From Bigelowiella natans CCMP2755 (taxonomy: Eukaryota; Protista; Cercozoa): DNA of 64,000 nt. The notes below the pieces were generated by a model that was given only the letters and a program-made list of their open reading frames with translations, searched no databases and was not told where the DNA came from. The translations under genes and the position numbers were made by a program. The stretch's first letter is position 1; each line of letters begins with the position of its first letter. This document shows, in pieces, positions 2,760 to 64,000 of the stretch. The stretch spans positions 124,001 through 188,000 of the forward strand of contig ADNK01001197.1 in the NCBI GenBank assembly GCA_000320545.1, in the 5' to 3' direction.

Positions 2760-4100
2760 AAATGCAATGATGACGACAACAACGACACTGACATCAGTGA
2801 ACATGTTGGAACAGTGCCTTCAAATCTTGGAAGAATTCCGCACACTGATGTTCCTTCCCATTGACGTGGAGTGGGGGGGACATGGAAATTGTTCTTGCCT
2901 TCTGCCATGGCTAGCTGGGGACCGAGCCCGACCCAATCGTGTGTGACCAAGCCCTGCATTCCGGGTTGACGGTGCGCATGCGTCACTTGCTTGCCCATCT
3001 GAGGCGCGCCCAACTTTTCGGCAGTGCCAGTGCACACACGCCTGAAACGAAGAGGAAAAAGAAAGACGTTCTTCCCTCGTGGTGCTGCGTGCTGACATGA
3101 TGTCCGACGTAGAGTTTCCACGTGTGTACGCAACACTGGAACAGCACATGGCGTCGAAACGTGAACGTTCACGTTCTCACGCATGGAACACTCCGATCCG
3201 GTGCCTTCCAGCTAGCCAGCCTTTTTCCGGGTCACGCGAGTCACCTTTGCAGGCTTCAAACAGCAGCCGAACGGCCGGTTCAAACGCACACAAGTGACTC
3301 TCCGCCACACTTTGAGTCGTGCACGCTGCTAGGCTGGCACGCAACTCCAGGCTAGCAGGATTGACGACCGACTGACCTGACCAACTTCAACGTGAAACAA
3401 TCCCTTGAATTTCATTTCCCACCATCGCATCCAGGGCACTTTGGCTCTGGAAACTTTTTGCAAGTAGCCATGCAGCTAGCCAGGCTGGTAGCAGTGTGCG
3501 TGTTCAGTTTGACCGTGCCATCACCCTCATCTAGCTAGCTAGTCATGCACGCACGCGCAACTGGTCGGAGTTCCAGCAGGCCTTGATGAGTGTGGGAAGT
3601 GCTTGGTGCATCAAGCTAGCAACAAGTTACAAAGTGAGTCACTTCAGCGGGACGATGCGCGCATCGCGTGCAACGCATTGATCATGTCAACCCTAACGCA
3701 GCTAGCCAGCCAGCCGCGTTGTTATGTCGAGATGTGTGGCAGATCTAGAGATGCAGCAGCTAGCTAGCTAGAGCAGTAGGCCGGTTCGCTGCGTGTGCCA
3801 TGCCGCCGCCATGCATCCATCTACAGGCCATGCATGGCTAAATGGTGAGCACGTGTCACATTATCATCTCTAGATCTGGTCAACATCATTCGCGATGCTC
3901 ACTGTTTTGTTTAATTTTGTTGCGCTATAGCACTTTTTTGCTCAACTGTTTGCTCTGCTCACAGCATCGCATTGCACGGTATGCTACGTGCGCACAGCGT
4001 GCTTACATCTTGTGTCGTGTGTAGTGTGCATTCGCGCTACCATGCTCTAGTGCTGACAATGACGACGTACTTGGTCCATCCACACACACGTGCATGTGTG
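2760..4100. other. TpA-depleted domain (2760-3460) with CTAG/CATG/TGCA-rich halo (3460-4100)
   Basis: Only a few TA remain in 2760-3460 (CTAG at about 2911, 3212, 3329, 3352; GTAG about 3109; GTAC about 3126). It is followed by GCTAGCTAG arrays and dense palindromic tetramers. Confidence 0.85.
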
Positions 4101-4233: not shown

Positions 4234-6090
4234 TCATGAACGCATTTTATTTACCGCATGCTGTATAACATCAATCGCAGCCATATCCTCGATGGTTCCT
4301 GGAATAGGAATATCAACACCATCAACTATTCCACGAATATTTTTCCGAAGTACTTTGCCGCTTCTTGTTTTCGGGAGCACATCAACATGGATAAGTTCCT
4401 TCAGAGTAGCAATTGGTCCCACTTCAGAACGTACTTTTTGCCTGATTTCAGCGAGAATTTCTTCTATCGAGTAGCCAGCTGTACCTTTGCCACCATCAAA
4501 TGGGTCGTCGGAAAGAACCACAAATGCGACTGGAACCTGCCCTTTAATTGGATCTGATGCTCCGATAACTGCCGCATCATTCACGGATGGATGAGCTTTT
4601 ATCACTGCCTCAATCTGTCCACTCGAAAGCCGATGGGCTGCAACATTTATCACATCATCTGTGCGCTCCAGGATGGTCACGTACCCATCCAGATCAATAA
4701 CACCAGCATCACCAGTCGAATAATATCCAGGAAATTCCTCGAAGTAGTTTAAGTATCTTTTTTCGTCGTTGTAAAGTCCAGAGAATGCTCCTGGGGGTAA
4801 AGGTAATTTGAGGGCAAGATGGCCTTCTGTCCCATTTTCTAATTTCTCTCCCTTATCGTTGAGGACTGTGACATCATAACCAGGAAGTGGAAGCGATGCT
4901 GAACCTGGGCGAGTACCGATATCATCATCTTGTAGACCACATATACACCATCCAGTTTCCGTTTGCCACCAATTGTCAACTACTCGTACTCCTAGGAGGT
5001 CTGCGAAATGCATGCTTGTACTTGGATCACACCGTTCACCTGCAACAAACAGGCTCGAAATATGTGACAAGTCATATTTCTTGCTCTCCTTTCCATGAGG
5101 GTCTTCTTTTCGAATGGCTCTTAGTGCTGTAGGAGCAGTAAACATGTTCCGGACATTGTACTGCTCTGCGATTCTCCAAAATGCACCTGCATCGGGCGTT
5201 CCCACAGGCTTTCCTTCGTACAAGACTGACGCGGAGCCATTCAAGAGTGGCCCGTAAACAATATAACTATGACCAACAACCCAACCTACGTCAGATGCCG
5301 CCCAATATACCTCCCCAGGGCGAGTTTCCATGAGATGTTCCATTGACCAACGAAGTGCCACACAATATCCACCAGTATCTCGAACGACACCTTTAGGTTG
5401 GCCTGTACTTCCGCTGGTATATAAGATATACAAAGGGTCATTACTATCGACAGGAACGGGGTCTGCTGGGGATACCGTAGACATCAGTTCATGCCAATCA
5501 TAATCTCTTCCTTGGATCAAATCGCATTCTCCTTGTGGCCTTTGCTTAATTATGCACTTCTCGGGTGGTGATGATGAAATCTTGATTGCTTCGTCAAGTA
5601 GAGGCTTATACTCGACAATCCGAGAACCTTCGATACCGCACGATGCACTTAATACTACCTTAGGGCTTGCGTCATTAATGCGAACCGCGAGTTCTTTTGG
5701 AGCAAAACCGCCGAACACAACAGAATGAATAGCCCCTAGTCGCGCACAAGCGAGCATCGCTATGACTGCTTCAGGAATCATAGGCATGTAAATGACAACC
5801 CTATCACCATGTTGCACCCCAATATCTTTTAGCATCCCTGCTGCTCGAGCCACCTCATCCCTGAGCTCACGAAAACTGTATGTGCATGCCGTGTTGCTGA
5901 CGGGCGAGTCATAAATCAGCGCAGTGTCGTCACCTCTGCCCCTATTTACGTGGACGTCTAGACAGTTGAAAGAAGCATTAAGCTTTCCTCCTGGGAACCA
6001 TTTGTAAAATGGTGGATTCGAGTCATCCAGCACCTTGGCTGGCTGCTCGAAAAACTCAATGTCCTTGCTCGCCTGATTCCAAAATTCCAT
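4234..6090 (-). CDS. Acetate/propionate-CoA ligase (AMP-forming acyl-CoA synthetase, PrpE/ACSS3-like); frame stays open about 100 nt further upstream, start uncertain
   Basis: 618-aa ORF with the AMP-binding motif YILYTSGSTGQPKGV, plus WWQTETG, YSTGDAG, RTDDVINVAAHRLS and LPKTRSGKVLR. The N-terminal DPMEFW...GGKLNASFNCLD is typical of acetyl-CoA synthetase-family enzymes. Confidence 0.95.
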   Translation of the reverse strand: MEFWNQASKDIEFFEQPAKVLDDSNPPFYKWFPGGKLNASFNCLDVHVNRGRGDDTALIYDSPVSNTACTYSFRELRDEVARAAGMLKDIGVQHGDRVVIYMPMIPEAVIAMLACARLGAIHSVVFGGFAPKELAVRINDASPKVVLSASCGIEGSRIVEYKPLLDEAIKISSSPPEKCIIKQRPQGECDLIQGRDYDWHELMSTVSPADPVPVDSNDPLYILYTSGSTGQPKGVVRDTGGYCVALRWSMEHLMETRPGEVYWAASDVGWVVGHSYIVYGPLLNGSASVLYEGKPVGTPDAGAFWRIAEQYNVRNMFTAPTALRAIRKEDPHGKESKKYDLSHISSLFVAGERCDPSTSMHFADLLGVRVVDNWWQTETGWCICGLQDDDIGTRPGSASLPLPGYDVTVLNDKGEKLENGTEGHLALKLPLPPGAFSGLYNDEKRYLNYFEEFPGYYSTGDAGVIDLDGYVTILERTDDVINVAAHRLSSGQIEAVIKAHPSVNDAAVIGASDPIKGQVPVAFVVLSDDPFDGGKGTAGYSIEEILAEIRQKVRSEVGPIATLKELIHVDVLPKTRSGKVLRKNIRGIVDGVDIPIPGTIEDMAAIDVIQHAVNKMRS

Positions 6091-13500: not shown

Positions 13501-13551
<51 letters not shown>

Positions 13552-18359: not shown

Positions 18360-21300
18360 TCATTTTATCTTTCCTCCTGTCTTCTTCCCTGCTTTTAGGC
18401 GTGCGGCGAGATCATCTTCTTGCTCCTTTTTACCCTGAATGCGATTCAAACATCATTATCTGAGCCTGTTTATCTATACTTTGGATATAATTCAAACAAC
18501 ACCACCTGCAATACTCTAGCTTTGATCCGTTCTCTAGCTTGTTGTAGCTTTTTCTTGAATCGAATTTGAAGCCTCACTATGCACCTAATTGTGTTCAGTG
18601 AAATTGTCCGCTTCTTCCCTGCTTTTAGGCGTGCGGCGAGATCATCTTCTTGCTCCTTTTTACCCTGAATGCGATTCAAACATCATTATCTGAGCCTGTT
18701 TATCTATACTTTGGATATAATTCAAACAACACCACCTGCAATACTCTAGCTTTGATCCGTTCTCTAGCTTGTTGTAGCTTTTTCTTGAATCGAATTTGAA
18801 GCCTCACTATGCACCTAATTGTGTTCAGTGAAATTGTCCGCTTCTTCCCTGCTTTTAGGCGTGCGGCGAGATCATCTTCTTGCTCCTTTTTACCCTGAAT
18901 GCGATTCAAACATCATTATCTGAGCCTGTTTATCTATACTTTGGATATAATTCAAACAACACCACCTGCAATACTCTAGCTTTGATCCGTTCTCTAGCTT
19001 GTTGTAGCTTTTTCTTGAATCGAATTTGAAGCCTCACTATGCACCTAATTGTGTTCAGTGAAACTACGGGTCTCTCTCTCTTTGCTGGAGCGGTCTCATC
19101 CCCAGGCATATGGATTCCTTCCGCTTTGTCACCTACACGTACCAGCCTATCTTGTCCATTTAAGGCGTCGAATTTAGCATGATCTACAGTACTAGCCTTT
19201 TTCTGGAAGGGATCGTCATTTTCTTGCTCCTTTCTTGTTTCCATGGACATCTTGATCATATCCGTTTTTTGGTCGTCACGAGCATCTTCATTGGCCATCT
19301 CCTCTGGTTTGCTCTCCCCATCGGCGACAGCGTCAGTATCTATCTCTTGTCTTGTGTTGAAATCATTGAAAGAGGCCTTGCGAGCGACGTTTGAATTCAT
19401 GCTGCCAAAGGATGTGGGAGAAGGACTGGAGAAATCACACGCACGACGATCTGCAGCCTCGTGCCATTTTTCTACACCCAGAAATCCATAGTGCTCTATA
19501 AATTCTGGCAATGAATATTTGTGCCCATCTTCGCCAATTCGCAGCTCCATGCGCCTATCTAAAGGGCCAGCTTCGATCCAAGGTTTAGCACTACCGTAGA
19601 ACTTAATGAAATCAAAAAGAGTGTACATGTTGTTGTCGCCATCCATACGCTTCTCTTTGCGGGAGAGTTCTGAGGGCATCATGCCTTTTCTCTTTGCTTC
19701 CACTTCAATCTTGAGCCTGGTTGGCACTGCCTCCGCATCACCCTGTTTACTAGCGTTCTTGCCCTCCGTACCTTGGGATGCTGTCTTCTTCAACCTTGGA
19801 GAAGAGCTATGGCCCTTTTGTTGAAGCTTTTTGTTACGTTCGTCATCATCTTGACTTGCCTCAGCAGCTATTTTCTCGTCACCTTCCTCCTCCCCCACTT
19901 CATCTATTGAATGCAGTTCATCGGTGGCAGTGGGCCTGATCACAGAGATAGTATTTGAGGCGACGCTAATGGCGCTAGTAAATTCAGAGGGGTGCCGATC
20001 CGCCGCAAGATGCCATTTCTCAATCGCCTCTACTGTTCCATAGTGCTCAATAAATTCTTCTACTGTGTAAGAGTGACCATCTTCCGCAAATCGCATTTCC
20101 AGTTGCATTTCCGGTGGCCCCGCTGCTATCCATTGCCGTACTTGCCCGTAAAATTGGTAGAACTCTTCTAGACTGTACAAATTCCCATCTTGGTCTTTTC
20201 GCTTCTCTTCGCGAGAAAGTTCTGAGGACAGTTTCCCCATAGCCTTGGCCTCTTCCTCCTTCTTGATCCTGATGATCTCAGCTTGATCTTCTGCTTTTTT
20301 TTGTGAAGCTTCAGCCTTGTGAGCAGCAGCTTCAGCTCCTGACTTTGCGTTGGCTTCTACATCAATTTTAGCTCTTGCCTTTTCCTCATCGTTCGCCTGT
20401 GCTTTTACTGCAGCTGCAGCTTCTGGCTTACCTTCAGTTTCTGTGGTGAAAGTTTCAGTTTGAACCCCGCTCATCTGGGCCGTGACAGCATCCTTCCCCT
20501 CCTTATTAGCAGTCGCGGTTGCGTCAATTTTAGCCTTCACTGCCTTGGCTTCAGCGTCAAGTTGCGCCATTTTCTCTTTTGCTTCTCCATTTACTGTCTC
20601 CTTGTCCTTGATTGCTTTCTTTAGAGCCTCTTCAACCTGTATCCTGCTTCTTCGCGCACGAGCGACCTCATCAGCCTCCTTTTCCTTGTTCAGGGAGGAC
20701 TCTGCTGCTGCTGTCTCGCTAGAGGCTGCACTTGTGAATTCCGAAGAACGGCGGTCAGCAGCCTCGTGCCACAACTCTACACCCTGTACCATATCATGCT
20801 GCACGAATTCTTCAAGCGAATACATGTGTCCGTCGTCTGCTAGCCGCATCTCAAGTCTCTTTTCAGCGGGTCCAGCTACAATCCACTGGTCCACGCCGCC
20901 ATAGAACTCGAAAAACTCGTTTAGTGTATAGTGCTGCCCGTTAGAGTCGCGTCGTCTCTCTGCGCGTGAAATCTCCGAAGGCAATCTACCGAGTGAGAAT
21001 GCAGTGTACTGCATAGTTTTCAGGCGAATGCTTTCAATCTCTGCCAAGCGTTTTTCCAGCTGTTTTAATGCACGAGTTTCTTTCTGTTTCTCCTCCTCGA
21101 GCTGGGTCTTCTTTTCATCTACCTTCACTCTTCTCATGGACTTTGTTTCGACTCCCCCTGAAGTAGCAGCACTTTCTTTACTTACGATACCATTATCATC
21201 ATCATCATCTTTGCCTTGAACGTTCACTGTACCACTCACTGTTTCAAGATTATTCTGCTGCGTCGCCTTTGCTGCCAATGCAGATGCTGCTTCTATTTTG

Positions 21301-22625
21301 CTGCTTCCACCTTCAAAGTTGCCTTGTTGTTGTTGTTGTTGTTGCATTTTTGCTTCCTTTCTTTCTCTTTCCGTATTCTTTCCTTGAGAAGAAGAATCCG
21401 CCCCTGATGCCACATTATATCCTGCTGCTACTTCACCTCCTACTTTCTTCTCCAACCGTTGTTTTTCCTCTTGTATATTTACAATTCTCTTCTCCTCAGT
21501 TTCAACACTTAATTCCTTTGGCGCTGCGAAATCTGTCAATTTTTCTCCCTTCGTTTCAACATTGGATTTTGTATCATTTAATGTAGCATCTATCTCTTCC
21601 TTCGTTCCATCCGTTGGGTTCTGCTTCATATCTTTTCCAGTGTCTGATACGAGCTTGACTGTATGCTTCTTCTCAGCCGCAACTGCTGTTGCATCCACTG
21701 TGGCGTCAGTGACCTCATTATTGGTTAGAGACTCTTTTGCATCGACATTGACTTTACCATTTTCCTGGTCTCTATCTAGCTTGATTTTATCTTGGTCTTT
21801 GGTATTATCCTCTGCCTGAAGCCTGTTGTCGTCCTTCTCTGGAGAATTAGTTTGTTCTCTTTCCAATACATGCCCTGCTTTAGCTTGGTTTGTCATCAGC
21901 GACGATTCAATGTCTTCTTCGCCCTGTTTTGCATCCGCCGCCTCAGCTTTACCTTTCGTTCCTGAACCCCCTTTCGCATTTCCCACAGCTTCTGCTTTCG
22001 CTGTTGCTGCTTTCTTCGTATTTGCATCTGACTCATCATCATCTACCTTAGTTACTACTCCAGGCTGCTGCTGGTTTTTATTTGCCGCATCATCATTCTG
22101 TGCTACATCTGCTGCTACCACTGCTGCCGTCACCTCAGTTTCTTCCTTGGACTGATACTTTGCTGCTTTGACATTCTTTGTGTCGGCCTCATCTTTCAAT
22201 TTCTGCTCGGCTGCAGCCTTCGCTGATGCTCTAGCTCGAGCTTCTTCCCTCTCCCGTGTTTCCTCCTCCGCCTTAGCCTTTGCTTCTTCCTTCTGCTTTG
22301 CCTCCTCAGCCTTAGCCCTTGCTGCTTCCTTCTTCTTTGCTTTCTCGGCCTTAGCCCTTGCTGCTTGCTTCTTCTTTGCTTTCTCGGCCTTAGCCCTTGC
22401 TTCTTCTTCCTTCTTTGCCTCCTCAGCCTTAGCCCTTGCTTCTTCCTTCTGCATTGCCTCCTCGGCCTTAGCCCTTGCTTCTTCTTTCTGCTTTGCCTCC
22501 TCAGCCTTAGCCCTTGCTTCTTCTTTCTTCTTTGCCTCCTCGGCCTTAGCCCTTGCTTCTTCCTTCTTCTTCTTTGCCTCTACAGCTGCGACTTCAGCTT
22601 CTAGCCTCGCTCTTTCTTCGGCCTG
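18360..22625 (-). CDS. 3' part of a large protein: charged helical repeats, six DGxxY(T/S)xxEFxxxYG..W modules, and three IQ-like C-terminal repeats. Further probable upstream exons extend to roughly 23-27.6 kb (not assembled).
   Basis: Long exon 18966-22625 (contains the 1174-aa ORF) with acceptor ttcacag at about 22626. Three 71-nt GT-AG introns (18895-18965, 18665-18735, 18435-18505) keep the frame, and the protein ends ...ARLKAGKKTGGKIK* at 18360-18362. Confidence 0.8.
18381..19063. repeat. 230-bp tandem repeat, about 3 identical copies (159-nt exon + 71-nt intron unit)
   Basis: cttcttccctgcttttaggc recurs at 18381, 18611 and 18841; identity continues to 19063. Confidence 0.97.
22270..22580 (-). 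repeat. 39-bp coding tandem repeat (EEARAKAEEAK[K/Q]K), about 8 copies
   Basis: Unit gcctcctcagccttagcccttgcttcttccttctgc is repeated in frame. Confidence 0.9.
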
Positions 22626-32348: not shown

Positions 32349-33959
32349 ACAAGTGTGTTATTGTGAGGGGAAGCATTTCATCTTAACATTAAGTTTTGCT
32401 TTCAATTTGGTCATTTCTTTTTTTCTGAAAACTACATCTTCTGCATTCTAAATCTACCTTTTTAGATTGTTTTTCAGAATTTAACCAATTTAGTATGAAT
32501 ATGATTGAAATCTTATTTAGACTCATTTTCTCCGAAGGTCACTTTGACAAATTTGCCCACATTACTTAGTGAGCGACTTGGCCAAAGCGACAAATTATTG
32601 TTAGGTTTTGTCCGCTCCGTAATTATAATCGTCCGGGCAACAAATGAAAATGACACGGTGGGTGCAATCACCTATCAATGTACTGCTGTCTCCTCTCTTC
32701 TATGATGACTCCACACAACCCAGCTCGCTTCGAGTTTAACGATGAAGAAAGATGTGTTCTCACGTTATTTTGTCTGAAAAAATCCACGTGTAAACGTCTT
32801 ATCATCTAGATTGGATACCGTAGTCCTCACGAATGCTTTTTTTGTTTTGTTTTTGAAGGTGCTAGCGCATAGCATGCTCCGTTCTCTCCAATATAATAAT
32901 GTTAGTTTCTATTTGTAGAAATGCCACATTAAGTCAGTGACTCGGTTTGCCCATTGCCGAATCACGTTACAAATGTGGGATAACAAATTTGAGATCTAGG
33001 CGCTTGTTATAAGCGTTGTAGTACCTCATTCGCTTCCGAGAGTTGTGCATGGGATTTGTTTCCTCTCAGAGAAAACACAGTTGTGCCTTTGTACTTAGTT
33101 CAGGAGCACACAAATTTTGACAGTAGTGTAGAGGTTTGAACGTTTGCTGTGGAGACGGTCAAGCAGAGGTGTCGCCCACACCTCTGCTTAACATTACATT
33201 ATTTCACAGCTAGAAAAATAACGGGAGGAGAATTGTTTCGGGCATGTTACCCGTTTGCAGTGCATCATCCCTGACATATTAACAAGAAACAATTGGGCAC
33301 TAAATAGGATCTAAGATGTGGATGATTTGTATACATTCAGGAAGTAAGGATGAAAATTAAACTCTAGGAATGAAGATTCTACTCATGCTCCAACACCATG
33401 GACAATACGAGTACATAGCATGTACATCGTATATATCATCAATACACACTTAGTCATAAACCATGGAATTGTGAGGCGCACATGCTGTCTGTGGAGATGA
33501 AATCCAGTTACAATGTGAAGCGCAATTGCACATTCTATGTCTGATAGCAACAGAGCATCCTATCATCATTCTCTCTCTACTAGCTGGCACACGTGGTGTG
33601 ACAGGCTAGCAGGATTGAAATTTCATTGAACTGCACGCATACGAATGACAAGCTGCTAGCAAGGCCTACTATACTAGTATACGATATTAGGTTATATAAG
33701 GTTGCTAGCTAGCTAGACTAGCCTAGTCTAGTAGTACTAGCCACGTGCCTTCGATCTTGCCATAGAGTAGCCTAGCAAGAAGGCATGTGCTAGCTAGCAC
33801 GCAGTAGAGCACTAGAGCATCACACAATGTGTCCAACGCTGCATGACGACTGACCACGCTACTATGCGATGCATGTGTAGCACATGTAAGCACACATCTC
33901 AAACGGCCTAGTGACCGCTACGCTAGCTTCTTCTTCTCGCGCACATGCGCAACGCGAAG

Positions 33960-36900
33960 ACCTACGCTACGCGCAGCAAAACTAAGCTTTCAAACGATGA
34001 CGAAAACCCCACAGAAGTGACAACAAAGGAAGGAAACGCATGTTCAATTTGTGACTTCGATTCAAGCCTTCAAGATGAAGACACCATTGACAAAGGTGAG
34101 GACAGGAAGGACTTTGACTTCTCGCTCAATGCATCCGCAAAGCACTCGCAAATGCCACATCTGACATGAAGAACCAAAGTCGGGAAAAAGGAGCAAACAT
34201 GGAAAAATTCAACAGAATTCTCTCCACTGTTTTGGAAAAAATCATGGATGACCAAAAAATGATCATCGCGGAAAACGTGTTGCTGAAATCCAGACTGACC
34301 AAGGTTGAACAAGAGCTAACAACGCTCAAAAGGAACCAAGTCCCCCGAGGTTTGCGGCAACCAGACACCCCATCCCCGCAACAAGACGAAAAGTCCCACG
34401 CAACAATTGTTAGACGCTGCAACGATGAAACGGCAAAGTCCATGCAAGGACCCTCAACACCCCCAAGGCAGACAAGAAGGGAAACCTCACAAGGACAATG
34501 GCAGACCCCCAAGAAACAGATGAGAAAGAAAAACAAACACAACCGGAAATGCAAACAGAACGTGGTCATCTTGGAACTTGATGCGAACATGATGATCTCA
34601 GAGGGGTCCGCAGAACGCCAAGCCGCTGCACCAAGCAACCCGTGCACCGAGAAAAAATTGGCAACGTCAACCCCCGATGAAAAGGCAAAACCAACAACAA
34701 GAGATGTGGACAGACAAATTGATTTGAATGCACCAATGAACTCCGAGGAAGATGAGGAAAAAAAGGACACTGCTGAAACCCCACCTGAACCGATCTAGCG
34801 ATGGAGCCGGCAGAAACTGCACCAACAGACAAAACGTTCCCAAGTGTTGGGAAATCAAACTCAGAAACAACACCCGACATCATTGGAAAACTGGGCCTTG
34901 CTGAGTTCGCTGTGCACAAAGTTTTCGTGAAGAAACACGGAAACGTGTTCCAGGGCATCCAACACAAAACTGGGAAAAGAAACCATTCAAAAACACTTTT
35001 CAGGGGAAGCAAAGATCCCAACATGGATGCTCACATCGGAGACCTGCAAGCCGAGCACAAGAAGCTTTCAGCATCATTTTTCCCTTCTCTGTTTGGATTC
35101 GCAAGAACCATCCGCCCAGCCATGTCAAGACCAACCAACCATTCGGTGGTGATGAAAGGACCACGATTGGGACCTGATGAACAGAGCAAGGCAGTGCGCA
35201 ATTCAATGATCAAGCAGATTGTTGAAACAAGCACTGCAGACGTGAAAATCGAAGCAGCAGAACACACGGGGAAGGGCCCACTGGTGCAATTGTTCGCAAA
35301 TTCCCGGGATGAAGTCGACAAACTGCTGAACACTGAAATCACTCACCAAGGCAGATGGCTGCGGATCAGGGCACACGAGAACAGAAGAAGACCAAAGCGT
35401 GTTCAAAGCCTCACCACTCTGCTTCCAAAACACACGGAGCAAAAACGGGACGGACAAACAAGGGAGACAAAGAATCAATGGAAGACGTGACATGCTCAAA
35501 GAAACAATGACTGCAAACAACACGGAGCTTGCTTGGTTTGCAGAGGGTGGATTGAAAAGTGCTGAAAAATTGCATCCGCCACCTGGATGCGAGATCACAC
35601 GTGCCAATGGCCCTTCTGGGAGCTTCAGCCTGCGCCAGAAAAACACAGACATTGCACACATGACTGCAGACAATGACAAGTGTGACACGAGCTTCTTTGC
35701 ACATCGTGCAGAAAAGTGTGCAATGACGATGGTGCACTCACAACCTTGCGATGTGTGCCATCTTGAGGAAAGGCTTGACTTCATCACGGACACTGTGAAG
35801 AAACAAAAGTGGAAACATCACATCACGGTGGGCGACACCAATGCCAAGCACTCTGCCTTTGATGTCCGTCACCAAGAAGACAGGCGGGGCAAACTTTTGC
35901 ACCAATGGCTTGCAGACAATGATGTCATGATGCTCAACCCTGGTGAAGTGACCCATTTTCGAAAGGGACATGCGAGCACGATCGATCACGTCCTGTGTTC
36001 ATCAAACATGGTGCAAGAAATCGAATGTCAAACGACCACCACTGCAACAAGCGACCACTTCGGCATGCACTTTGGCAAACCTGTGCCCAACCAAATCGAA
36101 ACCAAGTCAATGATTTGCGACATTGACAAACTCAATGTGGACCTGTTTGACGAACACCTGGACTCGATCACAGCCCCTTCAAGACAACGAATGCTTCGCG
36201 TTGCATCTGAGGCGGATTCAAAGAACCTTGAATGATGGTTCTGGAATTCAGTTCAACAAGCACGCAGAATCAGCACGCCAAAAAAAGAGCAACGATGGAG
36301 CCCCATTGAACCACACGAAAACCAACCAGCATGCAAAAAAATCAAACTGCAACAAGTTGAACTCTTCAGATCTCTCAGACACGAGAGGAAGTGCAGCAAG
36401 AGGAAAAAATTGGAAGAAAAAATCAAAGAAATCAACTTCGAACTTGAATCCATCACAGAAACACTCAGACACGAAGCATGGCAAAAATTCCTTGCTCGCT
36501 TCGAAAAATGCAACAACGGAAACCACACCAGACTGTTGTGCAAACTGTTCCAAAAATCAAGAGGAAAAACCAAACATCGCACCCTCGACGGCGAGACTTC
36601 AGAAACGAAAAAATGCCACGTGTGTGTCAGGAGGTGGAAGGACGTGCACAAACCTCACCCTGCAGATGCAAAAAACAGAACGTTTCACCAAGAAACAGAA
36701 CAATGGAGACACACCTTCCGAAATTCGGAAAACAAACATGGCACCTTGCCTTGCAACAGGAAATTCACCCCAGAGGAAATCCAGAGAACATTGCACACCA
36801 CGTCACCATGCAAATCCCCAGGTGACGATGGCATCCATCCAAGTGTGTTGAAGAAAAGCAACAAGTTGCATCAACTCTGGGCTCTTGTTTTCAACACATC

Positions 36901-38895
36901 GTTTCAATGGGGTGCCCGTCACAAGTCACGAAAAGCGGCCGTCTTCTGCTTGATCCCCAAACCCGGGAAAGAATCAAACACTCCCCTCAACGGCAGAACA
37001 ATTTCACTTCTCCAAATTGCTTCGAAAGTCGAAGACAAATTGGTTGAACTGCGATCACGTGAAGCCATCCCACCAGAGACTTGCAGAGAAGCTGAGCAAA
37101 TGCCAATGCGCCTTCAGAAGAACAGGTCATGCGAGACAGCACTGACCAGAATGACTCAGCGGATCGAAGACGGCACACTTGATGGAAAACTGGTCGGCAT
37201 CGTGCTGTTCACTGACGCATCAAAAGCTTGCCCTGAAGCCTGGCATTCAGGAATGGTGCGGAAACTGAGTGAAAAATGCGGTGCAAGGGGATCCCTGCTT
37301 CTGTGGATCGATGATTGGTTGAGGGAGCGCACTGCCAGATTTGAACTTGGCAGGACGCCATCACAACACGTGCAACCACAAAGCGGCGTGCCTGAAGGAT
37401 CCTCCCTCAGCTGCTGCTTGTTCATCACCCACTGCGACACATGCGAGCACATCAAGTTTGCTGATCACCAGATGCATTGCGACGATGTCACCCCACACAA
37501 ACTGTTTGCGCCTTCCCGCTGGGGGGAAATGCAAACCAGGCTGCAAAAAGATTTGACAAACACGACAACCTGGTGCATGAAGTGGCGAATGAGATTCAAT
37601 GGGGACAAAAGTGGACACCTGCTCATGGACAGCTAGACAGGAGGAAGGATGCACAAAAAAAACAAGCCTCATGGAACACGACACTCAACCTGCAAGGCAA
37701 AGTGAAAAGAAAAGAATGTGGCAAGTGTTTGGGACTGTGGTTTGACGAAAGATCAACTTTCGAAAAACACGCCCTTGCTGCACACGTGAAGCTGCAGAAA
37801 AAGAGAAGATTCTCACTCAGGCTGTGTTCCACACGATCTCACATGCCATTCAATGTGAGATTGAAGTTTTGCAACACATGGTTCACAGCCACGAGCAGAC
37901 ACGTTGCGCCCACATGGAGGTCCAAGAAAAACCTCAAAACAAAGCAGCTGGATTCCATGGAATCCCAAACACTCAAAAGAGTTCTGGGATCACCAGGATC
38001 CATGTCCAACGACACACCCCATGTGTCAGCGGCAACATTGCCACCACGTTGTCGCACACAGGTTCAATGCACCAAGACGTGGTTGCGAACCAATGTGTGG
38101 GTGGAGGATGCTGCTGGCAACGGACGTGTGGTGGAAGAAGAAGTGCTCAATTGGAGCTCTTTCGGATGCCACATCGAATCCTCACTGGAACACAAATGGC
38201 ACAATGCAACTAGGTCGTGGAACAGAGTGTCCTTGCACCGCCGACTCAGTTTGATTGCGACCAAATTGCTTGGAGCGGAACACCCCACAACACGTGCCAC
38301 TGAGGAGACACTGAAAAGGAAACTGAAAGCACACAACAAAACAATCATGCGGAACGCCGAATCCAACTTCAAAACTGATTGGAACAAAGAGGGAACCAAG
38401 GCCATGCATTTGAAAAAACTTGACTTCATGCCTGGCTCTCGGACAACAGGAATCACATTGAAGCTGCCAAGCATTGCCACATCATGGATGCGCGCCATCT
38501 GTGGTGTTGGCAATCTTGGTGCATTCGTGCTGTCCAGAGGACAACGCACAAAACTGGAAGCAACGTGCGATGTGTGCAACTCATTGCAAGACATGGACCA
38601 CATTCTGCAGCTGCAGGAAATGCGGACCACAGCGACTCAGAATCAACAAACAACTGACAGCGATCATGGATCGCAATGACGATCGAGACCACGCGTCTCA
38701 CAACCGCAGAGAAAACAAGTCGAGAAGCTGCGCGCAAAGCGCGCCATGCTGGACCAAAACAGGATGCATTTTCATGCATGCGCCATGTGACCAAGGAAAC
38801 AAACAGATGCAATTTGAGCGCTGCAGCCGCTGCATTGCACAGCTGCATTGGGATGACCATTGAAACAATTTGAACATTTCATTGCATCCGTCTCA
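33960..38895 (+). mobile_element. Decayed non-LTR retrotransposon (LINE): ORF1-like region, APE endonuclease, reverse transcriptase, C-terminal CCHC-type knuckle; TpA-hypermutated
   Basis: Endonuclease: QRING, VGDTNAKH, RGKLL, THFRKG..STIDHVL, SDH (35460-36070). RT: SPGDDGI, LIPKPGK, RTISLL, RSCETAL, FTDASKA...WH, GVPEGSSLS, HCDD (for YADD), QKDL...W...W..RFNGDKS, KCLGLWFD (for KYLG). C-terminus: CDVCNSLQDMDHIL. There is a premature TGA at 36233 and there are frameshifts. Confidence 0.95.
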
Positions 38896-39020
38896 TGCAT
38901 GAGCACGATGCATTGTAGCCACACAGACGGTGCAGCGAATCCATGAATGTCAATGCGAATGACAACACGTGCATCATCATGTGCATGCGCATGACAGACA
39001 CAGCAACAGCACACACATTG

Positions 39021-39660
39021 TGAGACGGATGCAATGAACAATTGAATTTTTTCAATGGTCATCCTGATGCAGCTGTGCAATGCAGCGGCCACAGCGCCAA
39101 TGTTGTGTCTGTTGGTTTCTGCCACCACGTGCTTCATGCATTTGAAAGCGTCCTCAAGTGTCCGATGTTGTCGCGCGCTGCGCGCAACAGTTCTTGAATC
39201 CTTTTCAGCCTTTGTCAACCGGTCACGTTTGTCTCGTCGTTGCGATTCATGATTGCGCTCAATTGATTGCGCAATCTGATTTGTTGTCGACCATGTGTTG
39301 GAGCTTGCAGGAGATGATCCATGTCCTTCAGGATGCCACATGCATCGCATGCACGTGGCATCTGTCTCTGTGCATTGTCCACGAGAAAACATGAATTTTC
39401 CAAGATTGCCGACACCACAGATGGCGCGCATCCATGGCATGATGTAGCGACACTTGGAAGTTTTGGTTTGATGCCGGTGATCGAAGATGACGGAAGGAAT
39501 CCAAGATTCTTGAGATGCACAGCTCTCAGTGAATCATTGGACCATTCCTCCTCGAATTCGGCAAAAGCACAAGATTTCATCACTTTGTGATGTTTTTTTA
39601 AATCTTTTTTCAGCGCCTCTGTTGTCGTCAAAACAGTGGGAAGTTCGTCACCTGACAAGT
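39021..39660 (-). mobile_element. Second, diverged copy of the LINE 3' end, in inverted (tail-to-tail) orientation
   Basis: Minus-strand translation EALKKDLKKHHK...HLKNLGFLPSSSITGIKPKLPS and WMRAICGVGNLG...ETNRHNIGAVAAALHSC aligns to ETLKRKLKAHNK...HLKKLDFMPGSRTTGITLKLPS...WMRAICGVGNLG...ETNRCNLSAAAAALHSC of the plus copy (about 38290-38895). Confidence 0.92.
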
Positions 39661-39665
39661 CGTCG

Positions 39666-40058
39666 GAGTTGATGACGGATCAGCAGGCCCCATTTTTGCA
39701 GATGACGACTTTCCATGAAAAATCCAGCGCGTTCAATTTCTACTCTTTTTTCATGCGGACTTCGGCATTCGCTTGCTCTGCACCTGCTGATTGTCCATCT
39801 TTGTGGGACAACACAGGCTTTGAAAATTGAAAGAGCCAAGACAAATTGAATTTTCATGAAAGTGTGGCGGGAACTCTCGTTTCATGTGATGCAGCAATGC
39901 TTGCACAAGTCCCCCAAAACTTCACACTGCGCAGGCGCAGGAGAACGAATGTCGAAGTCCGCGTGAAAAAAAAATGAAAATTCGTGGTGCTGGCACATTG
40001 CAAAGTCGCTGTTGCTCAGGATCAGAGGGAATGGGGGCTGCTGATCCGTCATCAACTC
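39666..40058. repeat. Imperfect inverted repeat (arms about 125 bp, spacer about 145 bp); MITE/fold-back-like
   Basis: gagttgatgacggatcagcag...ttttttcatgcggacttcggcattcg...cacctgc (39666-39787) matches the reverse complement of 39931-40058. Confidence 0.8.
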
Positions 40059-40851
40059 TCGGTGATCGATTTCAGCCGGCGAAACAGAGATGCTTTGTTC
40101 CACGTGTTTGTGGACACATCAGTCCACGATGTGCCATCTGGTATTTTTCGATTTTCAATGATGAAGCCGTAACTGCTCCAATCATTTATTCCCTCATGCA
40201 TTTCAGGACCGCTGCCTGCACATGTTGTGTACATGGCATTACATGTCCACATGCTATGATAGCTACCCCCTTCTTCTATGCTTACAATAGACACAGTAAT
40301 AGCATGTATATTATTACATGTAATATTACATGTCTACAATGCGTGCGACATGTATGTCTGCTATGGATAGATCTAGCTGTAGCTCTAGCTAGCTAGCTCC
40401 AGTCTCCAGTCGTAGAGCTATCTAGCTAGCTACAGTCACATGCACATCAGAAGTTTTGCTCGTGTACGTACATGCATAGCACTAGAGCGTTACAAGCATG
40501 TCCACAGACACACAAGTCATTATCTATATGCATTCATGCTGCGTCAATCTAGCAATGCACACACTTTTCGTGCATGGTGTAGGTGTGTTTGCTGCTTAGA
40601 TTGTGTCCATAGCTATAGAAGATAAATCCACTATTTCACTTGTGGCATTCTCGTGGCACATTGCAAGACATCGCATTGTTGTTCATTGGTGCTCGGCATG
40701 TTTCAATGTTACTGCAATTTATTTAGATGTTGCACGCACAATCGCGTACTCTTAGTCACCGTCAAATGAAATTGCCATAGCTAACTCGGATGAACACGGC
40801 ACAAATTGGCCTTAGCATCGTAAAAATGAAACTAGGCATATTCTTTGAAAT

Positions 40852-41955: not shown

Positions 41956-42239
41956 TGGGATGGACTTTGAGCACCTTCCAGCCTCCTAAGACATAATTCT
42001 CGCAAATGCAGTTCAGCTTTCCCATTAGGTTGCTCTTCATCTTCCATTTCGTTGACGTATCTGAAAAATGATGGTCATCTTTGGAATCATGAAACTAAAT
42101 CCGGTTGCCGACTTGGCGGCACAAATTCGGAACGTACTTGAAAAGGCATACCAACTAATTCTACGACACTGAAAAAACAGAGATTCTGGAGTAAAAAAAA
42201 AGTGAGGCACAAGTGCATCATCAAGTTTCGCTGGTTGCA

Positions 42240-43290
42240 TGTCGCGACCATCCTCACGCTGTTCTTGGGTTGTGACGGGCAGTGACAGCCGAAAAATTGA
42301 AAGAATGTCGGTTCGTTGGAATCCTTTTTGACTGCCTCACGCCTTCTAGCCTTGCTAGCTTGCAATGTTCAATTGGCAATGTTCGGAGACGTCCCAGAGC
42401 TCCAGATGTGCTCACATGTGCATTGTGTGCTTGCAAGCTAGCAAGTGTGGTGTGTCGAGATGCACGATCATGCCACATCCTGGCATGGACATCATCGATC
42501 TAGCGATCCTCAGTCATTCTGGCACTCAACAATTGCAATGCCAGAATGTCCAGGTAGGTCGTGCAAGCGCTAGCAAGTGGAAGCGTGCATGTCAGTGCGC
42601 AATGCACACTGCACACACTCCAGCACCAACCCCAGAACAGGCAAGCAGCTAGCAAGTGCAACCCATGCTGGCATGCCAGCTAGCTAGCTAGCAGCTAGAA
42701 GTGTCCAGCGACTTTTCGTTCCTTTCCAGCATTCAAATTGTCATCGTTCTTTCAACACACGTCTCGGTCTAGCGGTGCTCTGGTGCCACCAGGCCAGCAT
42801 GAGCCACGTTTGCTCTTTCCTTCCTGACGAGTCTGGCTAGCTTGCTAGCTAGCTAGCTAGTAGGAGTCTTGTGGAAAATGATCCAAAAACGAACTTGACA
42901 CACATCAAAGTCGTGCCGATGCCCCTGCGAACGTGCTAGCGTGCTGCATGCTGGCATGTACTGACCAAGTGGCATTGGCTGCAGTCACAACGTCTTGCTT
43001 CACACCTAGTTGGATCTGGGCAAAAACTTCTTTCTTCAACTGTAGCAACTGCACATTGACATGTGTGCGAGGTGAGTCATTCATCATTGGCCAGCTTGGC
43101 TAGTTGGGCGATGTCTCGTCCGAATCATCACGCAACATGCACATCTCAATCAATTCTTGTTCGCCAACCTTTTTGCTTCATCTTCATGAACAACACTACT
43201 TCCGTTTGCGTTGAATGTCTGTCTTTGTCTTTTCATCATGATTTCTTCGGGAACAACTGCTGAAAGGACCATCACCTGCATGTGTGCTAA
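42240..43290. other. TpA-depleted domain with (GCTA)n / GCCAGC / GCTGGC arrays
   Basis: Nearly all remaining TA are in CTAG or TAG. The domain overlaps the inferred last exon of the K+ channel gene. Confidence 0.85.
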
Positions 43291-46267
43291 ACCATCATGG
43301 TCGTTGTCATTTGACATCGATTCTGACATTGTCGTACCATGTCCGTGTTGGAGACGAGCATATTTGCTTTAGGGCTCGTCACACAGTATCGTTTCATCTA
43401 TCATGTCATATTAATCGTATTTGTGTTTTTGGAAAAAAATTAAAGTGCTACCTCATTTCCCTCTTTGTTCCTTCGCACACAATATCTGATGCATACATGC
43501 CACAGTGAAGATGGGAACAATGAAAGTAACATGATAATTATGTGATAATCAAAAATTTTATATCTTCTGATGCAAACATTATGCTTACTTACAAAGCAAC
43601 TGGAATAATTTTCTTTGGAATGAAGTAATTCCGCACGGATTTCCAGTCCCTATAACAATTCCAACCATTGGATGAAGTTATTCTTATCACACTACGAGGG
43701 TATATTAGTTTTACTTTCCAGAAGTCGCCATCGCCTTTATCCTGTAAATGAAATTATTAGTAGATGTCTACATTCTTGAGTTGCTTTTATTTCATTCCGA
43801 GTATTTCATTTGGTGTTTCACCGACCTGATTCCATATACTTGTGCATGGCCTGCTCTACTCGATGTGAGCATAAGAGCATTCATCACGTTGACAAGGTAG
43901 GGGTTATCTTGACTCTATAGACAAGCAAAACCAGAAGAAGAAAAAGAAACAAAAGAAAAAGGAAAATAAAAGAAGGAGAAGGAACAGAGGGGGAGCAAGA
44001 GGAGGAGGAGAGAGGGGTTATGCTAGCAACTTTCATATGGTCAATCGAATTAAAGATCAGAGCTATTTTACCTGCATTAGCAACAACTGAGCGATTCTTT
44101 TAGGCACAGCCCGACCCTGATGAACGTGGAAGCCTCAAATGAACATACGCAGCTGTTCTCTCTTTCTTTCGCCCCTTACCCTCCGCATTTTAAATATCAA
44201 TTCGTTCACCTCTGCAAGCAAAGGATTCGTAAACTCTCTCTCATCAGGCCAGTAATGTAAGTATCCTAGCTGAAAAGGACAACGGGAATACTTACAAAAG
44301 AACATAGCAATAGATAATACTCTATTCTTAGACGCTCCTCCTCCTCCTCCTCCTCCTCCTCCTCCTCCTCCTCCTCCCCATGAACATGAGTAACATTAAT
44401 ATGGAAATGCACTTTTGAGTAGAGAACCCCATACCGTATTCATGTCACTAAGCTCTGTTACAATCGGAACGTATCTATTTGGTCATAAATAAAGAGATTT
44501 CGTTCAAATGACAACGCAAATTTATAAAATACATATTTTTTCGGAACGCTGCTACCATCGTTCCCGCTAATTTTTACCTGCATCCTTGGTTTCGCATCAT
44601 CTCCAAATACGATGATAATCGCACAGCAAGAAACATAGCAGGTGCATCCTTTAGTAATGGGTTGAAGAAATATAATAAAAGTCACCACGTCATTAGAGAG
44701 AGAGCTTCCACCATTTTTTATAATAGGTGTTCATGAGTAGAATCTTTCGTCTAAAGCACCAACAGTGACTGTGAAGGTGAAACGCGAGGAGTATAATTAC
44801 TCTACAACAGAAATTGCCAATCTTACTACAACTAAGACTACATTATGACCTCTGGGAGTGAGAGCAAAAGGCTGTTCTCACCATCTTCAACTCGATGCTC
44901 GCATACGATCACTTGTCTGTTAATAACAGATTAGTACAAAGAACAGTGATGGAGATGATTATAGTGACAACCATGACGAAGACGACAACAACGACGATGG
45001 AGACCGTAAAAGTAAACTATAACAACCGATGAACAGACTGTAACTATTTTGTTTGCAAAGCCTACATCGATTTGGCTCTTGGGCAGTGACGACTGATCAT
45101 GGAGGGATACCACCTGCATCTCTCCAGCTTCAGCATGCGGAACAATCTTTTGTCCCGCACGTTGTTTTTAATCCAATAAACCTATTGATGACGATAACTA
45201 TATAGTTTTAAACGCTTAAGAGTGGCAAAACACCATAGAAATACAACAACACCTACAGCGAGAACAGCATACACGGTTCTGCTATGGTGATCCTACTTCC
45301 TTCTACCTCCTTGCATAGTGATAATGCTCTGATATCCGGATAAACCTTCGAGAGACTTATTTTTGTGTGATAAATAAAATTTTGTTCCCATTGATAACAT
45401 GAAATTAAGAAACCAAATTCTTTCGAATAGTGGGAATCGTTGCAATTTTTCTAAAACGATTCGGGGATGTACATTATCATTATTCCTCAGTGTTTGTAAT
45501 AGCGATTATCTCCTCTATTTCATACGGCTACTTTCTAAACTTTCTATTAGTACTTTTGCGAATGAACCACTACTACTTTGATCGATGACTTTTGCTGTGA
45601 AACCTAATATTTTGAAGCATAAGAGCTGTCAGACGCACGGATCTCCGGGAAATTAAGTTATACCTTCATGGCAGAATAAAAATAGAGTGTAGGACAATAT
45701 AATTACCCGAAATTAAGAGAAACTATTTACCTTCCATCGCCTTTTTATAGGACTTAATAAATAATGGAGATCCTCTGGCCTTGGGTCGAAGATAACAATA
45801 TGACCATGCCATTTATCACATAGTACCTGAAAAATTAGAAAGAGGAAGGGAAAAGAGAAAAGAGACAGCATTTCTGGATACATTTCTCTACTGTTCGTCC
45901 AAGTAAAATAGTAAATTGTATATCGTAAGAATGTTGCAAACCAGATTTATATAACAATCGAACTGAGTGTTTTCACTCAGATTGATTCAGGGATGCTATA
46001 TCGAACAAATTTGATGATGTATGAATACTACTGTAACACAATTGGCAGCAGCAGCAATTTCCTCCGTAGAAATTATTCAGGCTTCTAAATGAAGGTAGTT
46101 TTGTGCATGTAACTTTTGACTCATTAACTACCTCTGTATTGCTTTGTGCTCCATCAAAAACATGGGTTATATACACAGACATGCCGCTGGTGTAATATGT
46201 AAGTGTGAGTTCGATGAAGCTTACATCGTTCTACATTTTACATATCCACGCACACACACGCCCCCCC

Positions 46268-62239: not shown

Positions 62240-64000
62240 ATTGGCCACAATGAGCTTCTGCTCAAATGGACAACCCAACAAATGTCAAACATTCTTGTTA
62301 ACCAAAACAAACACATCTAAACGCATGTGCATCAATGTTCACATTTGTGGCTGCGCGAAGCGTGACTTGGTCGACACGGTCGTCAGCAATCATGTTAACA
62401 ACACAGTGATTTGCACATCTAGCCAGCATGCTAGTATGCGCCATGCACAGTCGCGTGTAGTCGACCTCACATGATCAAAAAGCAGCATGGCTGGCTATAG
62501 CCAGGCTGGTCGGTCTAGCGATGCAATGTGTGGATGGCGACCGCTGTGCGACGATCTATCTATGTCCATGTAACCACATTAGCATTGCACAATTTGCAGC
62601 TTGCCGCAAAAAGCGCAGCGTCGCGTGCGTGCAAAAAAATGATTGCATTGAGCATGTGCGCACAGTCGCTTGCGCGTGCACAGCTGCGCGCACTTTTGCA
62701 TCGCGCGCATTTGCATTGCGCACGATGCACGTGTGCACACATCGTGCTGCGTGGACGTGCAGTTGTGGCGCACGTGCGCACGTGCGCACATGCACTGCAC
62801 GCTCGTGCGTTCCAAAGATGCATGCACGCACGTGTCTGCACGTTGTTTGTTGCGCAATTTTGCAATGCAACGCTCACGTTTTTCGATGAAAAAACGATCG
62901 TGCATTGCGTGCGATGCAACTGCACGAGTGCACGCACGCTAGCACGCGTGCACGTGTTCAACGTGCGCAGCCGTCACCAGTGCTTTGGCAGAGCCCGCTG
63001 CCTTGCTCTGTTTGCACTTTGAGCTGCCATGACAATTTGCTCGCCGTGCAGCGCGTGCAGTGCAAAAAGTGACGCTTTTCAGCGGTGCATGCGATGGCAT
63101 GTCAAAACGACAACTTGCAACAAGCAGCAGCAGCGACACTCCAGCATCAAATTTCAGACTCGTCGCTGCTGCTGCTAGAAAGCACCTTCTTCTCCCCGTC
63201 CCACACCGACTCTTCGAAAAAAAAAATGCCAATGTGCTGATTGGACTTGACCATTTCGCATTGCTCAATGGTGGTTCCATTCGGAACCCGCACATTGAAC
63301 TCGTGCTGGGAGGGAGGCAGTTTCAGTTTTTCAACGTTTCTTTGGCTCTGACTTGCTCAGAAGTCAGAGCCGCCACTTTCGTTGACAAAGCCACCACGTC
63401 AGCTTTTTCCTTTGGTGGCTTTGTTTTCATTGTCACCTGATGCGAACGAACACGCAAGGTGACATCGATTGTGACGAAGCTGCGCAGGGCTTCACATTGA
63501 GTTCCGCTGTGGAACTAGGTGCACCCATGTGAAAGCAAAAGTGAAATGGGAAAGCACCTTTGTCATCGAGTGGACTTTGTCCACCTCGAATTCATGTGAA
63601 GCCCTGCAGAGCTTGTTGATCAACATCCACGTCCCTGAGTCAAGCTCAACTTCAAAGGGCGTGGGGCCGCGGAGCAGCATCTGCTCCGCCAGGTCGCTCT
63701 CAGAGCGACCCATCTCCTCGTCTGCACTTGCGTCGGAGAGGTCATCACTGACCTCCGGATCGTGTTGCCGTGCTCTCTTTCGAGACGGCGTTGAGGAGGA
63801 GGAAAGGCTGCTAGCGGGTTCAAGTCCCAGGGTCCGCGCTCGGCGCTTCACCTGGTTCCCGTTGGCCTTCCCTCGGCCAGAACTGAAGCAAGTTTTCGAT
63901 GGATGAGCCCAGGGCCGGGCAAGCTTGTCAGGAGGGATCGTGCGGATCCACCCTTTCAATTTGCGGTCCATCTCGTCCGTCCACTTCAACCCCATTGGAC
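62240..64000. other. TpA-depleted domain (core 62600-64000) with an alternating purine-pyrimidine tract
   Basis: From 62600 to 64000 I find only four TA, all in CTAG (about 62940, 63176, 63517, 63812). Confidence 0.9.
63492..63995 (-). CDS. Myb/SANT-like N-terminal domain protein (host or transposon accessory gene), TpA-converted
   Basis: KWTDEMDRKLKGWI...PWAHPSKTCF...NQVKRRARTLGL resembles a Myb/SANT helix-turn-helix. It has no Tyr, and the ORF length is inflated by the loss of TAA/TAG. Confidence 0.4.
   Translation of the reverse strand: MGLKWTDEMDRKLKGWIRTIPPDKLARPWAHPSKTCFSSGRGKANGNQVKRRARTLGLEPASSLSSSSTPSRKRARQHDPEVSDDLSDASADEEMGRSESDLAEQMLLRGPTPFEVELDSGTWMLINKLCRASHEFEVDKVHSMTKVLSHFTFAFTWVHLVPQRNSM

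Follow-up and report, generated by a model that had tools for sequence, protein, structure and literature searches.

TpA>TpG/CpA hypermutation of integrated foreign DNA in Bigelowiella natans has been described by Mettrop et al. (bioRxiv 10.64898/2026.01.13.699255). According to the main text of this preprint, 231 of the 302 new single-nucleotide mutations in B. natans mutation-accumulation lines fell within one integrated nucleocytoplasmic large DNA virus (NCLDV) region and one virophage region, and 230 of these 231 were A>G or T>C changes, all on TpA. The genome was reported to contain 124 clusters depleted in TpA and enriched in CpA+TpG; TpA-depleted coding sequences (CDS) were enriched for DDE endonuclease, endonuclease-reverse transcriptase (RT) and RT domains; and the ADAT2-like protein Bn78255 was proposed as a candidate DNA adenine deaminase. 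The NCLDV and virophage insertions are still TpA-rich (3.3% and 9.2% TpA). One hypermutation target is stated to be single-copy, so that repetition is not required for the process. The literature searched contained no natural TpA-targeting A:T to G:C process beyond this one 2026 preprint. Here, a stretch of 64,000 nt from B. natans CCMP2755 (the window; contig ADNK01001197.1, positions 124,001 to 188,000 of the forward strand; all coordinates below are those of the window) was analysed, in which two tail-to-tail copies of a non-long-terminal-repeat (non-LTR) retrotransposon (long interspersed nuclear element, LINE) have lost nearly all of their TA dinucleotides.

As in the system of the preprint, TpA alone is hit, giving TpG or CpA, and the target is foreign or mobile DNA. 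The sequence features by which the preprint recognises its targets were all found in the tract, namely TpA-only transitions, both outcomes, depletion of TA with enrichment of TG+CA, and a mobile-DNA target, the last identified by the domains PF14529 and RVT_1 and by full-length homology to a LINE with two open reading frames (ORF1 and ORF2). On this comparison of sequences, the process matches the B. natans TpA hypermutation, and the locus would represent a new, saturated retrotransposon example. New mutations were measured in the preprint only in the NCLDV and virophage insertions, with older targets inferred from composition, whereas the retrotransposon pair described here is ~96% saturated and its changes were polarised against natural TA-bearing relatives. 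A term search of the preprint's main text returned no strand symmetry, absence of runs, base-level tract edges or nesting of conversions among relatives. The process itself has already been reported recently; the locus adds its polarity at the level of single bases, its strand symmetry, the absence of runs, edges inside the element and the stop-free property, together with evidence of conversions accumulating along the history of the family. It would display the end state of the process on a retrotransposon, ~96% complete, strand-symmetric, composed of single independent events and sharply confined.

Two better-known groups of systems are comparable in part. Fungal repeat-induced point mutation (RIP) likewise produces dinucleotide-specific transitions on both strands of mobile or repeated DNA, inactivates transposons and leaves sharply bounded compositional islands, but it is opposite in direction: CpA is changed to TpA, GC is lowered and stops are created, whereas here TpA is destroyed, GC is raised and no stops arise. 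RIP, recognised by C>T at CpA or other CpN with creation of TpA and lowered GC, was therefore rejected as an assignment. Animal APOBEC3/ADAR hypermutation shares the deaminase-type, context-dependent transitions that cripple retroelements. It acts on single-stranded cDNA or double-stranded RNA and leaves a one-strand signature (G>A or A>G) with a looser neighbour preference, unlike the present locus, where the two strands are affected to the same extent and the context is all but absolute.

Reciprocal sites and their polarity

The two LINE copies meet in an inverted repeat. An earlier note on this DNA had aligned 38780-38895 (plus arm) with the reverse complement of 39021-39140 (minus arm), which are identical in 88 of 116 columns, and had reported four sites at which one arm carries TG and the other CA. 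The letters were exactly as claimed at all four: 38808-9/39106-7 (plus arm/minus arm; aga-TGC-aat versus aga-CAC-aac), 38824-5/39090-1 (GCA versus GTG), 38849-50/39065-6 (catTGgg versus catCAgg) and 38871-2/39043-4 (aattTGa versus aattCAa). The alignable arms extend further, with the plus arm (38395-38897, plus strand), which covers the C-terminal part of ORF2 and the 3' untranslated region, aligning to the reverse complement of the minus arm (39019-39529, minus strand) over ~500 nt at 72% identity (350 matches, 85 transitions, 52 transversions and 40 gap columns). Among the eight double-transition dinucleotide classes in this alignment, CA/TG occurred 14 times and each of the other seven 0-2 times, with CG/TA at 0. 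In 20,000 permutations of the alignment columns, the number of TG/CA discordances averaged 1.86 (standard deviation 1.32, maximum 9) and never reached 14. The reciprocal TG/CA pattern is thus far beyond chance.

The direction of change was determined with natural TA-bearing relatives in place of a consensus or ancestral sequence. These relatives are public metagenome contigs, retrieved by protein and DNA-pattern searches. A distant one, L001 (1734 nt), has a TA observed/expected ratio of 0.81 (136 TA, ~8% of positions; GC 37.5%) and shows 56% amino-acid identity to the plus-copy ORF 37477-38679. L004 (MDTE01204107.1, 5162 nt) has both reading frames intact (ORF1, 483 aa; ORF2, 1158 aa) and is 91.3% identical to the plus copy at the nucleotide level; it differs from L006, which comes from a different sample, at 4 positions in 2459 nt. 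L002 and L003 are close to the minus copy (TA observed/expected 0.31), and L007 has a ratio of 0.78.

At all four cited sites L001 has TA (AGA-TAT-AAT with a Tyr codon, GCT-GTA-GCC, CATTAGG and a TAA stop), as the ancestral state proposed in the earlier note demands; the second site is GTA in L002 and L004 as well, and the third is TA in L004. L001 covers 13 of the discordant columns between the arms and holds TA at 10 of them, TG at 2, CA at 1 and CG at none, so that the outcome named in the note as speaking against its proposal, outgroups with CG at the discordant columns, did not occur in L001. The tyrosine codons expected to reappear in an unconverted relative did so: all 38 tyrosines of L004 ORF2 are replaced in the window (Cys 19, His 13, the remainder other residues), and the ORF2 remnant is free of tyrosine.

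Over the whole element, 204 TA sites of L004 could be aligned to the window, where they read TG (93), CA (85), TA (9), CG (5) or something else (12); 195 were lost, 178 of them to TG or CA. Of 196 CG sites in L004, 176 were unchanged. TA>TG or TA>CA accounted for 188 of the 431 differences from L004. Within the tract, A>G after T affected 0.497 of sites and T>C before A 0.457, compared with 0.013-0.083 in every other context, and part of this off-context residue is due to conversions in L004 itself, seen as 21 CA/TG discordances in the L004-window alignment. None of the 129 L001 TA sites compared with the window was kept, and 48 had become CA and 47 TG. The ancestral dinucleotide was TA, and decay of CpG is excluded as its origin.

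Probable single, independent events on both strands

The two outcomes were balanced, with TG:CA ratios of 93:85 against L004 and 47:48 against L001. Along the element, TG and CA formed 93 runs compared with 89.8 expected (z = 0.48). Strand-coordinated, processive editing was rejected, as the runs test showed no such clustering; the arrangement resembles what many single events, on one strand or the other, would leave. The flanking base exerted no control over the choice between TG and CA beyond a weak trend (TAC giving 41 TG and 29 CA). At L001-TA sites the two arms were concordant 13 times and discordant 10 times, close to the ~50% expected from independent coin flips, so there is no strong site determinism.

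Conversion of the retrotransposon pair is ~96% complete. The reverse-transcriptase active-site box reads HCDD in the window and YCDD in L001 (P0003), and the RVT_1 score is 24.1 bits compared with 60.5 in L004. A native TA-poor composition or selection was rejected, since relatives have normal TA densities (L001 0.81, L007 0.78) and catalytic as well as other tyrosines are replaced. It follows from the genetic code that TA>TG and TA>CA never create an in-frame stop (TAA becomes TGA or CAA, TAG becomes TGG or CAG). Because TAA and TAG have been erased and stops are never created, 28 ORFs with a length of 80 aa or more are present in the tract, on both strands and in all frames. Dead, tyrosine-free elements of this kind keep long open frames in all six frames, and gene callers will over-predict CDS in them. 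The JGI Bigna1 models P0001, P0002 and P0004 look like gene calls on sister copies. GC rises under the process, from 37-44% in the relatives to 48% here.

Structure of the locus

The plus-strand copy is a full-length LINE at ~33888-38895, for which the identity to L004 given above extends over 4966 nt. Its 5' end is approximate (33888-33904, set by L006 and L007), and its 3' end reads ...CATCCGTCTCA. The ORF1 remnant (33945-35403, plus strand), delimited by tblastn with L004 ORF1 and P0126, is broken near 34124 and at 34795-34804. The ORF2 remnant (35378-38870, plus strand) carries the endonuclease PF14529 and the reverse transcriptase RVT_1, the latter now below the Pfam threshold. It is interrupted three times: by a stop-containing gap (36236-36409), by a frameshift in the region of 37570-37630 and once more between 38610 and 38685. 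On the minus strand lies a 5'-truncated LINE copy of a sister subfamily (39021-40222), with 73-85% amino-acid identity to P0005, which is encoded by L002/L003. The two copies are separated by a spacer of 125 nt (38896-39020) that represents two abutting element tails; it consists mostly of TG/CA units where relatives have (TA)n, with 1 TA left. The locus has the characteristics of a non-LTR LINE with an APE endonuclease, i.e. ORF1 and ORF2, an N-terminal endonuclease, an RT, a 5'-truncated copy and a simple-repeat tail. The proteins closest to the element are JGI Bigna1 (B. natans) gene models with 76-92% identity. A self-BLAST of the window revealed no further copy of the LINE, and an Rfam scan of the window gave no match.

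A foldback, MITE-like (miniature inverted-repeat transposable element) insertion at 39666-40058 interrupts the minus copy. Its 29-nt terminal inverted repeats are complementary at 28 of 29 positions (97%), it is not present in L001 or L002, and it contains only 1 TA, so it was converted together with its host element. Further inner arms and a probable 3-bp duplication were also noted in this insert.

The arms differ by 10.7% transversions, compared with 1.2% between the plus copy and L004. The minus arm matched L002 in 535 columns with 39 transversions and the plus arm in 374 columns with 127 transversions. Both arms have a ...CATCCGTCTCA terminus and a tail of their own. Judged from these comparisons, the arms are the 3' ends of two related LINEs lying tail to tail rather than an in-place inverted duplication. 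Local inverted duplication was rejected on the subfamily assignment, the plus arm being nearest L004 and the minus arm nearest L002; twin-priming inversion was rejected as well, the arms representing the same segment of the element and not adjacent segments.

Some microsatellite-targeting non-LTR retrotransposons insert into particular simple repeats, for instance the R4-clade element Dong at (TAA)n and Waldo, Mino and Kibi at others. Like them, the present LINE ends in a simple repeat, ...CATCCGTCTCA followed by (TA)n, and what precedes it in relatives is either (TA)n or another copy's tail. In L001 the ...CATCCGTCTCA terminus is followed by (TA)n, in L006 the terminus of a preceding copy plus TATATA abuts the 5' end of the next copy (L006:1-60), and in L007 (TA)n lies just upstream of the 5' end (L007:1-70). 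From these data we infer that the family ends in (TA)n and, with the target preference taken from three junctions, probably also inserts into (TA)n. A tail-to-tail pair would readily arise in this way because (TA)n reads alike on both strands. The likeness to Dong, Waldo, Mino and Kibi lies in the association with simple repeats, and the domains confirmed here are the APE and RT Pfam domains only.

Limits of the TA-free tract

Dinucleotide composition was scanned in 500-nt windows, compared with 1 kb in the preprint (10.64898/2026.01.13.699255). The TA-free tract extends from 33984 to 40141, without strand assignment, and holds 9 TA in 6.16 kb, with TA observed/expected values of 0.01-0.04 and enrichment of TG+CA; over 33901-40300 the means were 0.03 for TA and 1.57 for TG+CA. 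CG observed/expected within the tract was 0.67-0.85. With 9 TA left, few new events would be expected at this locus in mutation-accumulation lines. Outside the tract, TA observed/expected was 0.7-0.95 in most of the window and normal or high directly at the tract borders. Ordinary (TA)n arrays elsewhere in the window (at 13505, 22941, 29490, 46270 and 52009) are unconverted.

Both edges lie inside the element. At the left edge, the 5'-most part of the plus copy (33909-33983, plus strand) is spared, with all 6 TA common to L004 retained; an atypical T>A change follows at 34022 and the first TA>TG/CA conversion at 34050. Beyond this segment, 3 of 198 L004 TA sites survive in the plus copy. In the full-length copy, conversion thus stops ~95-160 nt short of the 5' end, with no leak into flanking DNA. 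At the right edge, three TA of the minus copy survive (40142, 40170 and 40187); as this copy extends to ~40222, its spared stretch is 40142-40222 and conversion ends, less securely, ~80 nt inside its truncated end. This right-hand inset is suggestive only, as it comes down to 2-3 TA sites after allowing for inheritance of the L002 type. In this tail-to-tail arrangement, the 5' ends of both copies, which are spared, are also the outer edges of the composite. The limits of the tract are read here as carrying mechanistic information; in-place, domain-limited targeting and editing during retrotransposition cannot be separated by the edges of this single locus.

Other parts of the window are also poor in TA. 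A second tract runs from 62581 to 64000, where it leaves the window, with 4 TA in 1.4 kb and a mean TA observed/expected of 0.08. It starts abruptly after a PHD-TFIIS-SPOC gene, its first 400 nt are rich in TGCGCA/TGCACG, and it contains a minus-strand open frame (63495-63998) without a Pfam match; the tract is unrelated to the LINE. Weaker stretches at 2701-3500, 42001-42600 and 42901-43400 (TA observed/expected 0.27-0.35, TG+CA 1.4-1.7) may be either old or partial tracts or merely GC-rich coding sequence.

Timing of the conversions

The earlier note had placed the changes after duplication and after insertion. The first part stands as far as independent resolution from TA is concerned, but not with respect to an in-place duplication, given the 10.7% transversions and the closer relationship of the minus arm to L002. 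The second holds for the lineage-specific part of the changes: at the four cited sites, 6 of the 8 arm states are specific to the lineage relative to L004 or L002 and 2 are shared. It does not hold for the states that the minus copy shares with L002. Besides the resolutions shared by the plus copy and L004, 31 sites in the 3' 1.7 kb, and 178 over the whole element, were converted in the window lineage only. In the region shared with L002, 7 TA sites remain in that contig, of which 4 are converted and 3 retained in the window.

Several observations weigh against action in place at this locus as the source of all conversions. At 34 homologous TA-derived sites that are converted in both the minus copy and L002, the two have the same outcome in 30 cases, and L002 lies at other loci, since the 3' flanks of L002 and L003 diverge. 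Because these 30 resolutions are held in common with DNA at other loci, most of the TA loss of the minus arm predates this insertion and came down from a source lineage that was already scarred. Of 61 resolutions at L001-TA sites, 54 are likewise common to L004 and the plus copy; for changes that such close relatives share, the polarity depends on a single distant outgroup, L001, with its GC content of 37.5%. At the protein level, and with low power, agreement with the plus copy amounts to ~11/13 states for P0004, ~10/14 for P0002 and ~6/12 for P0001, which suggests that other B. natans copies may have many, not all, states in common with it. Finally, the spared 5' ends of both copies would be predicted equally by editing during retrotransposition.

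Relatives with open reading frames also bear patches of TA loss. L004 keeps 3 of 54 TA across L001 positions 701-1400, and L002 retains TA mainly in its 5' part and less in its 3' part. The nested conversions among relatives suggest that the LINE family goes on multiplying as hypermutation scars build up in it, which would make it a tractable system for an arms race between element and defence. From figures in the preprint (211 mutations, 3,132 generations, 6,169 TpA; 10.64898/2026.01.13.699255), a rough rate of ~1.1e-5 conversions per TpA per generation was calculated, at which, assuming the same average rate, 96% conversion would take roughly 3e5 generations.

Proposed process and alternatives

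The observed direction of change, TpA specificity, strand symmetry, lack of strand-coordinated runs, near-saturation and sharp tract limits are read as follows. Two tail-to-tail LINE copies would have been hit in place, on chromosomal DNA, by a process that makes a single transition in TpA and in practically nothing else; this reading is given a probability of roughly 80%. As TpA is self-complementary, a hit on one strand would yield TpG and a hit on the other CpA. Each site would be resolved once per lineage, at random, and would then be immune, because no TpA remains; in homologues that both started from TA, roughly one in two independently converted sites would therefore be a TG/CA double mismatch. 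Such reciprocal columns between paralogues could offer an easy internal means of recognising the process in other genomes. Action in place, of the kind that the B. natans mutation-accumulation lines revealed for integrated viral DNA, would have continued through the history of the family, so that some conversions were inherited by subfamily members and others are private. The near-exact strand symmetry and the likewise TA-free foldback insert argue for action in place over action before integration. The candidate chemistry is adenine deamination in a 5'-TpA context by a putative ADAT2/TadA-like enzyme. To our knowledge, no natural DNA adenine deaminase of such kind has been characterised.

A different chemistry, in which the thymine of TpA is targeted by 5-hydroxymethyluracil- or base-J-like hydroxylation or by excision with error-prone repair, would leave the same trace: TpA is palindromic, and A>G is thus indistinguishable by sequence alone from T>C on the opposite strand. 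Thymine modification in particular dinucleotide contexts occurs in other protists, but the literature examined contained no evidence of it in chlorarachniophytes. The main text of the preprint instead names an ADAT2-like candidate with a residue pattern linked to DNA editing and points out that A34, which follows U33, is the natural substrate of tRNA adenosine deaminases (10.64898/2026.01.13.699255). Targeting of thymine is accordingly considered unlikely, although it keeps some weight.

Editing during retrotransposition would resemble the restriction of retroelements by APOBEC3. A TpA deaminase would act on LINE RNA, giving TG in the sense strand, and on first-strand cDNA, giving CA, and the copies would arrive already mutated. 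The unconverted stretches are indeed 5' ends (33909-33983 and 40142-40222), the last cDNA to be made, L002 is richer in TA in its 5' than in its 3' part, and conversions are nested among relatives. The sparing is non-discriminating, as the 5' ends coincide with the outer edges of the composite. The balances of 93:85 and 48:47 would require finely matched efficiencies on RNA and cDNA, whereas a process on duplex DNA yields them without further assumptions; the plus copy is saturated throughout, with no gradient; and the foldback insert, not found in the relatives, is TA-free as well. According to the preprint's main text, viral DNA in the chromosomes of B. natans, which does not retrotranspose, acquires the same signature through new mutations (10.64898/2026.01.13.699255). 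Taken together, editing on the way into the genome is judged improbable.

The tail-to-tail pair might itself have been the trigger, in that read-through hairpin RNA would give rise to small RNAs that direct a DNA adenine deaminase specific for TpA to homologous sequences, in cis as well as in trans. This reading is speculative and its chances are judged slim. If true, it would amount to an RNA-guided natural A:T-to-G:C editor serving as a genome defence and would explain the same scar patches in the still-intact family members L004 and L002.

The literal scenario of the earlier note, duplication of one 3' end in inverted orientation at the locus with all differences arising later, agrees with the adjacency and inversion of the arms 125 nt apart. 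It is very hard to sustain against the 52 transversions and 40 gap columns in ~500 nt, the closer relationship of the minus arm to L002 and of the plus arm to L004 than of the arms to each other, the separate ...CATCCGTCTCA terminus and tail of each arm, and the extension of the minus copy over 1.2 kb with a typical 5' truncation.

ADARs prefer a 5' U neighbour. Since the locus is an inverted repeat, ADAR-type A-to-I hyper-editing of a hairpin RNA from the two arms, fixed by retrotransposition, has some appeal, and the neighbour preference is also raised in the discussion of the preprint (10.64898/2026.01.13.699255). It is scarcely credible given a uniform tract of 6.2 kb, ~12 times the arm length, sense-strand T>C as frequent as A>G, sparing of ApA, CpA and GpA (0.013-0.049) far stricter than ADAR neighbour preferences, and arms that represent two separate insertions and not one transcript later copied.

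Deamination of an ancestral methylated CG to TG in one arm and CA in the other, formally as parsimonious for a TG/CA pair as an origin from TA and compatible with the 10 CG/TG and 5 CG/CA columns of the arm alignment, has practically no chance of being correct in view of the L001 states (CG at 0 of 13 discordant columns, TA at 10), the persistence of 176 of 196 L004 CG sites, the tract ratios of 0.67-0.85 for CG and 0.01-0.04 for TA, and the per-copy decay of ~0.35 obtained from 14 CG/CG columns and 15 columns of CG against TG or CA, which predicts ~2 discordant columns and not 14.

Other features of the window

A propionyl-CoA synthetase gene (4234-6090, minus strand) is intron-free and not TA-depleted (0.76). 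Its nearest named eukaryotic relative is that of the chlorarachniophyte Amorphochlora amoebiformis (66%), and many bacterial enzymes show 57-60%; on the basis of these similarities, the gene is possibly of bacterial origin. A 1174-aa ORF (18930-22454, minus strand) has no Pfam match and a strong strand composition skew. A perfect tandem repeat of three 230-nt units (18381-19063) overlaps its end, and a 39-nt repeat present in 7.9 copies (22262-22571) lies at its other end.

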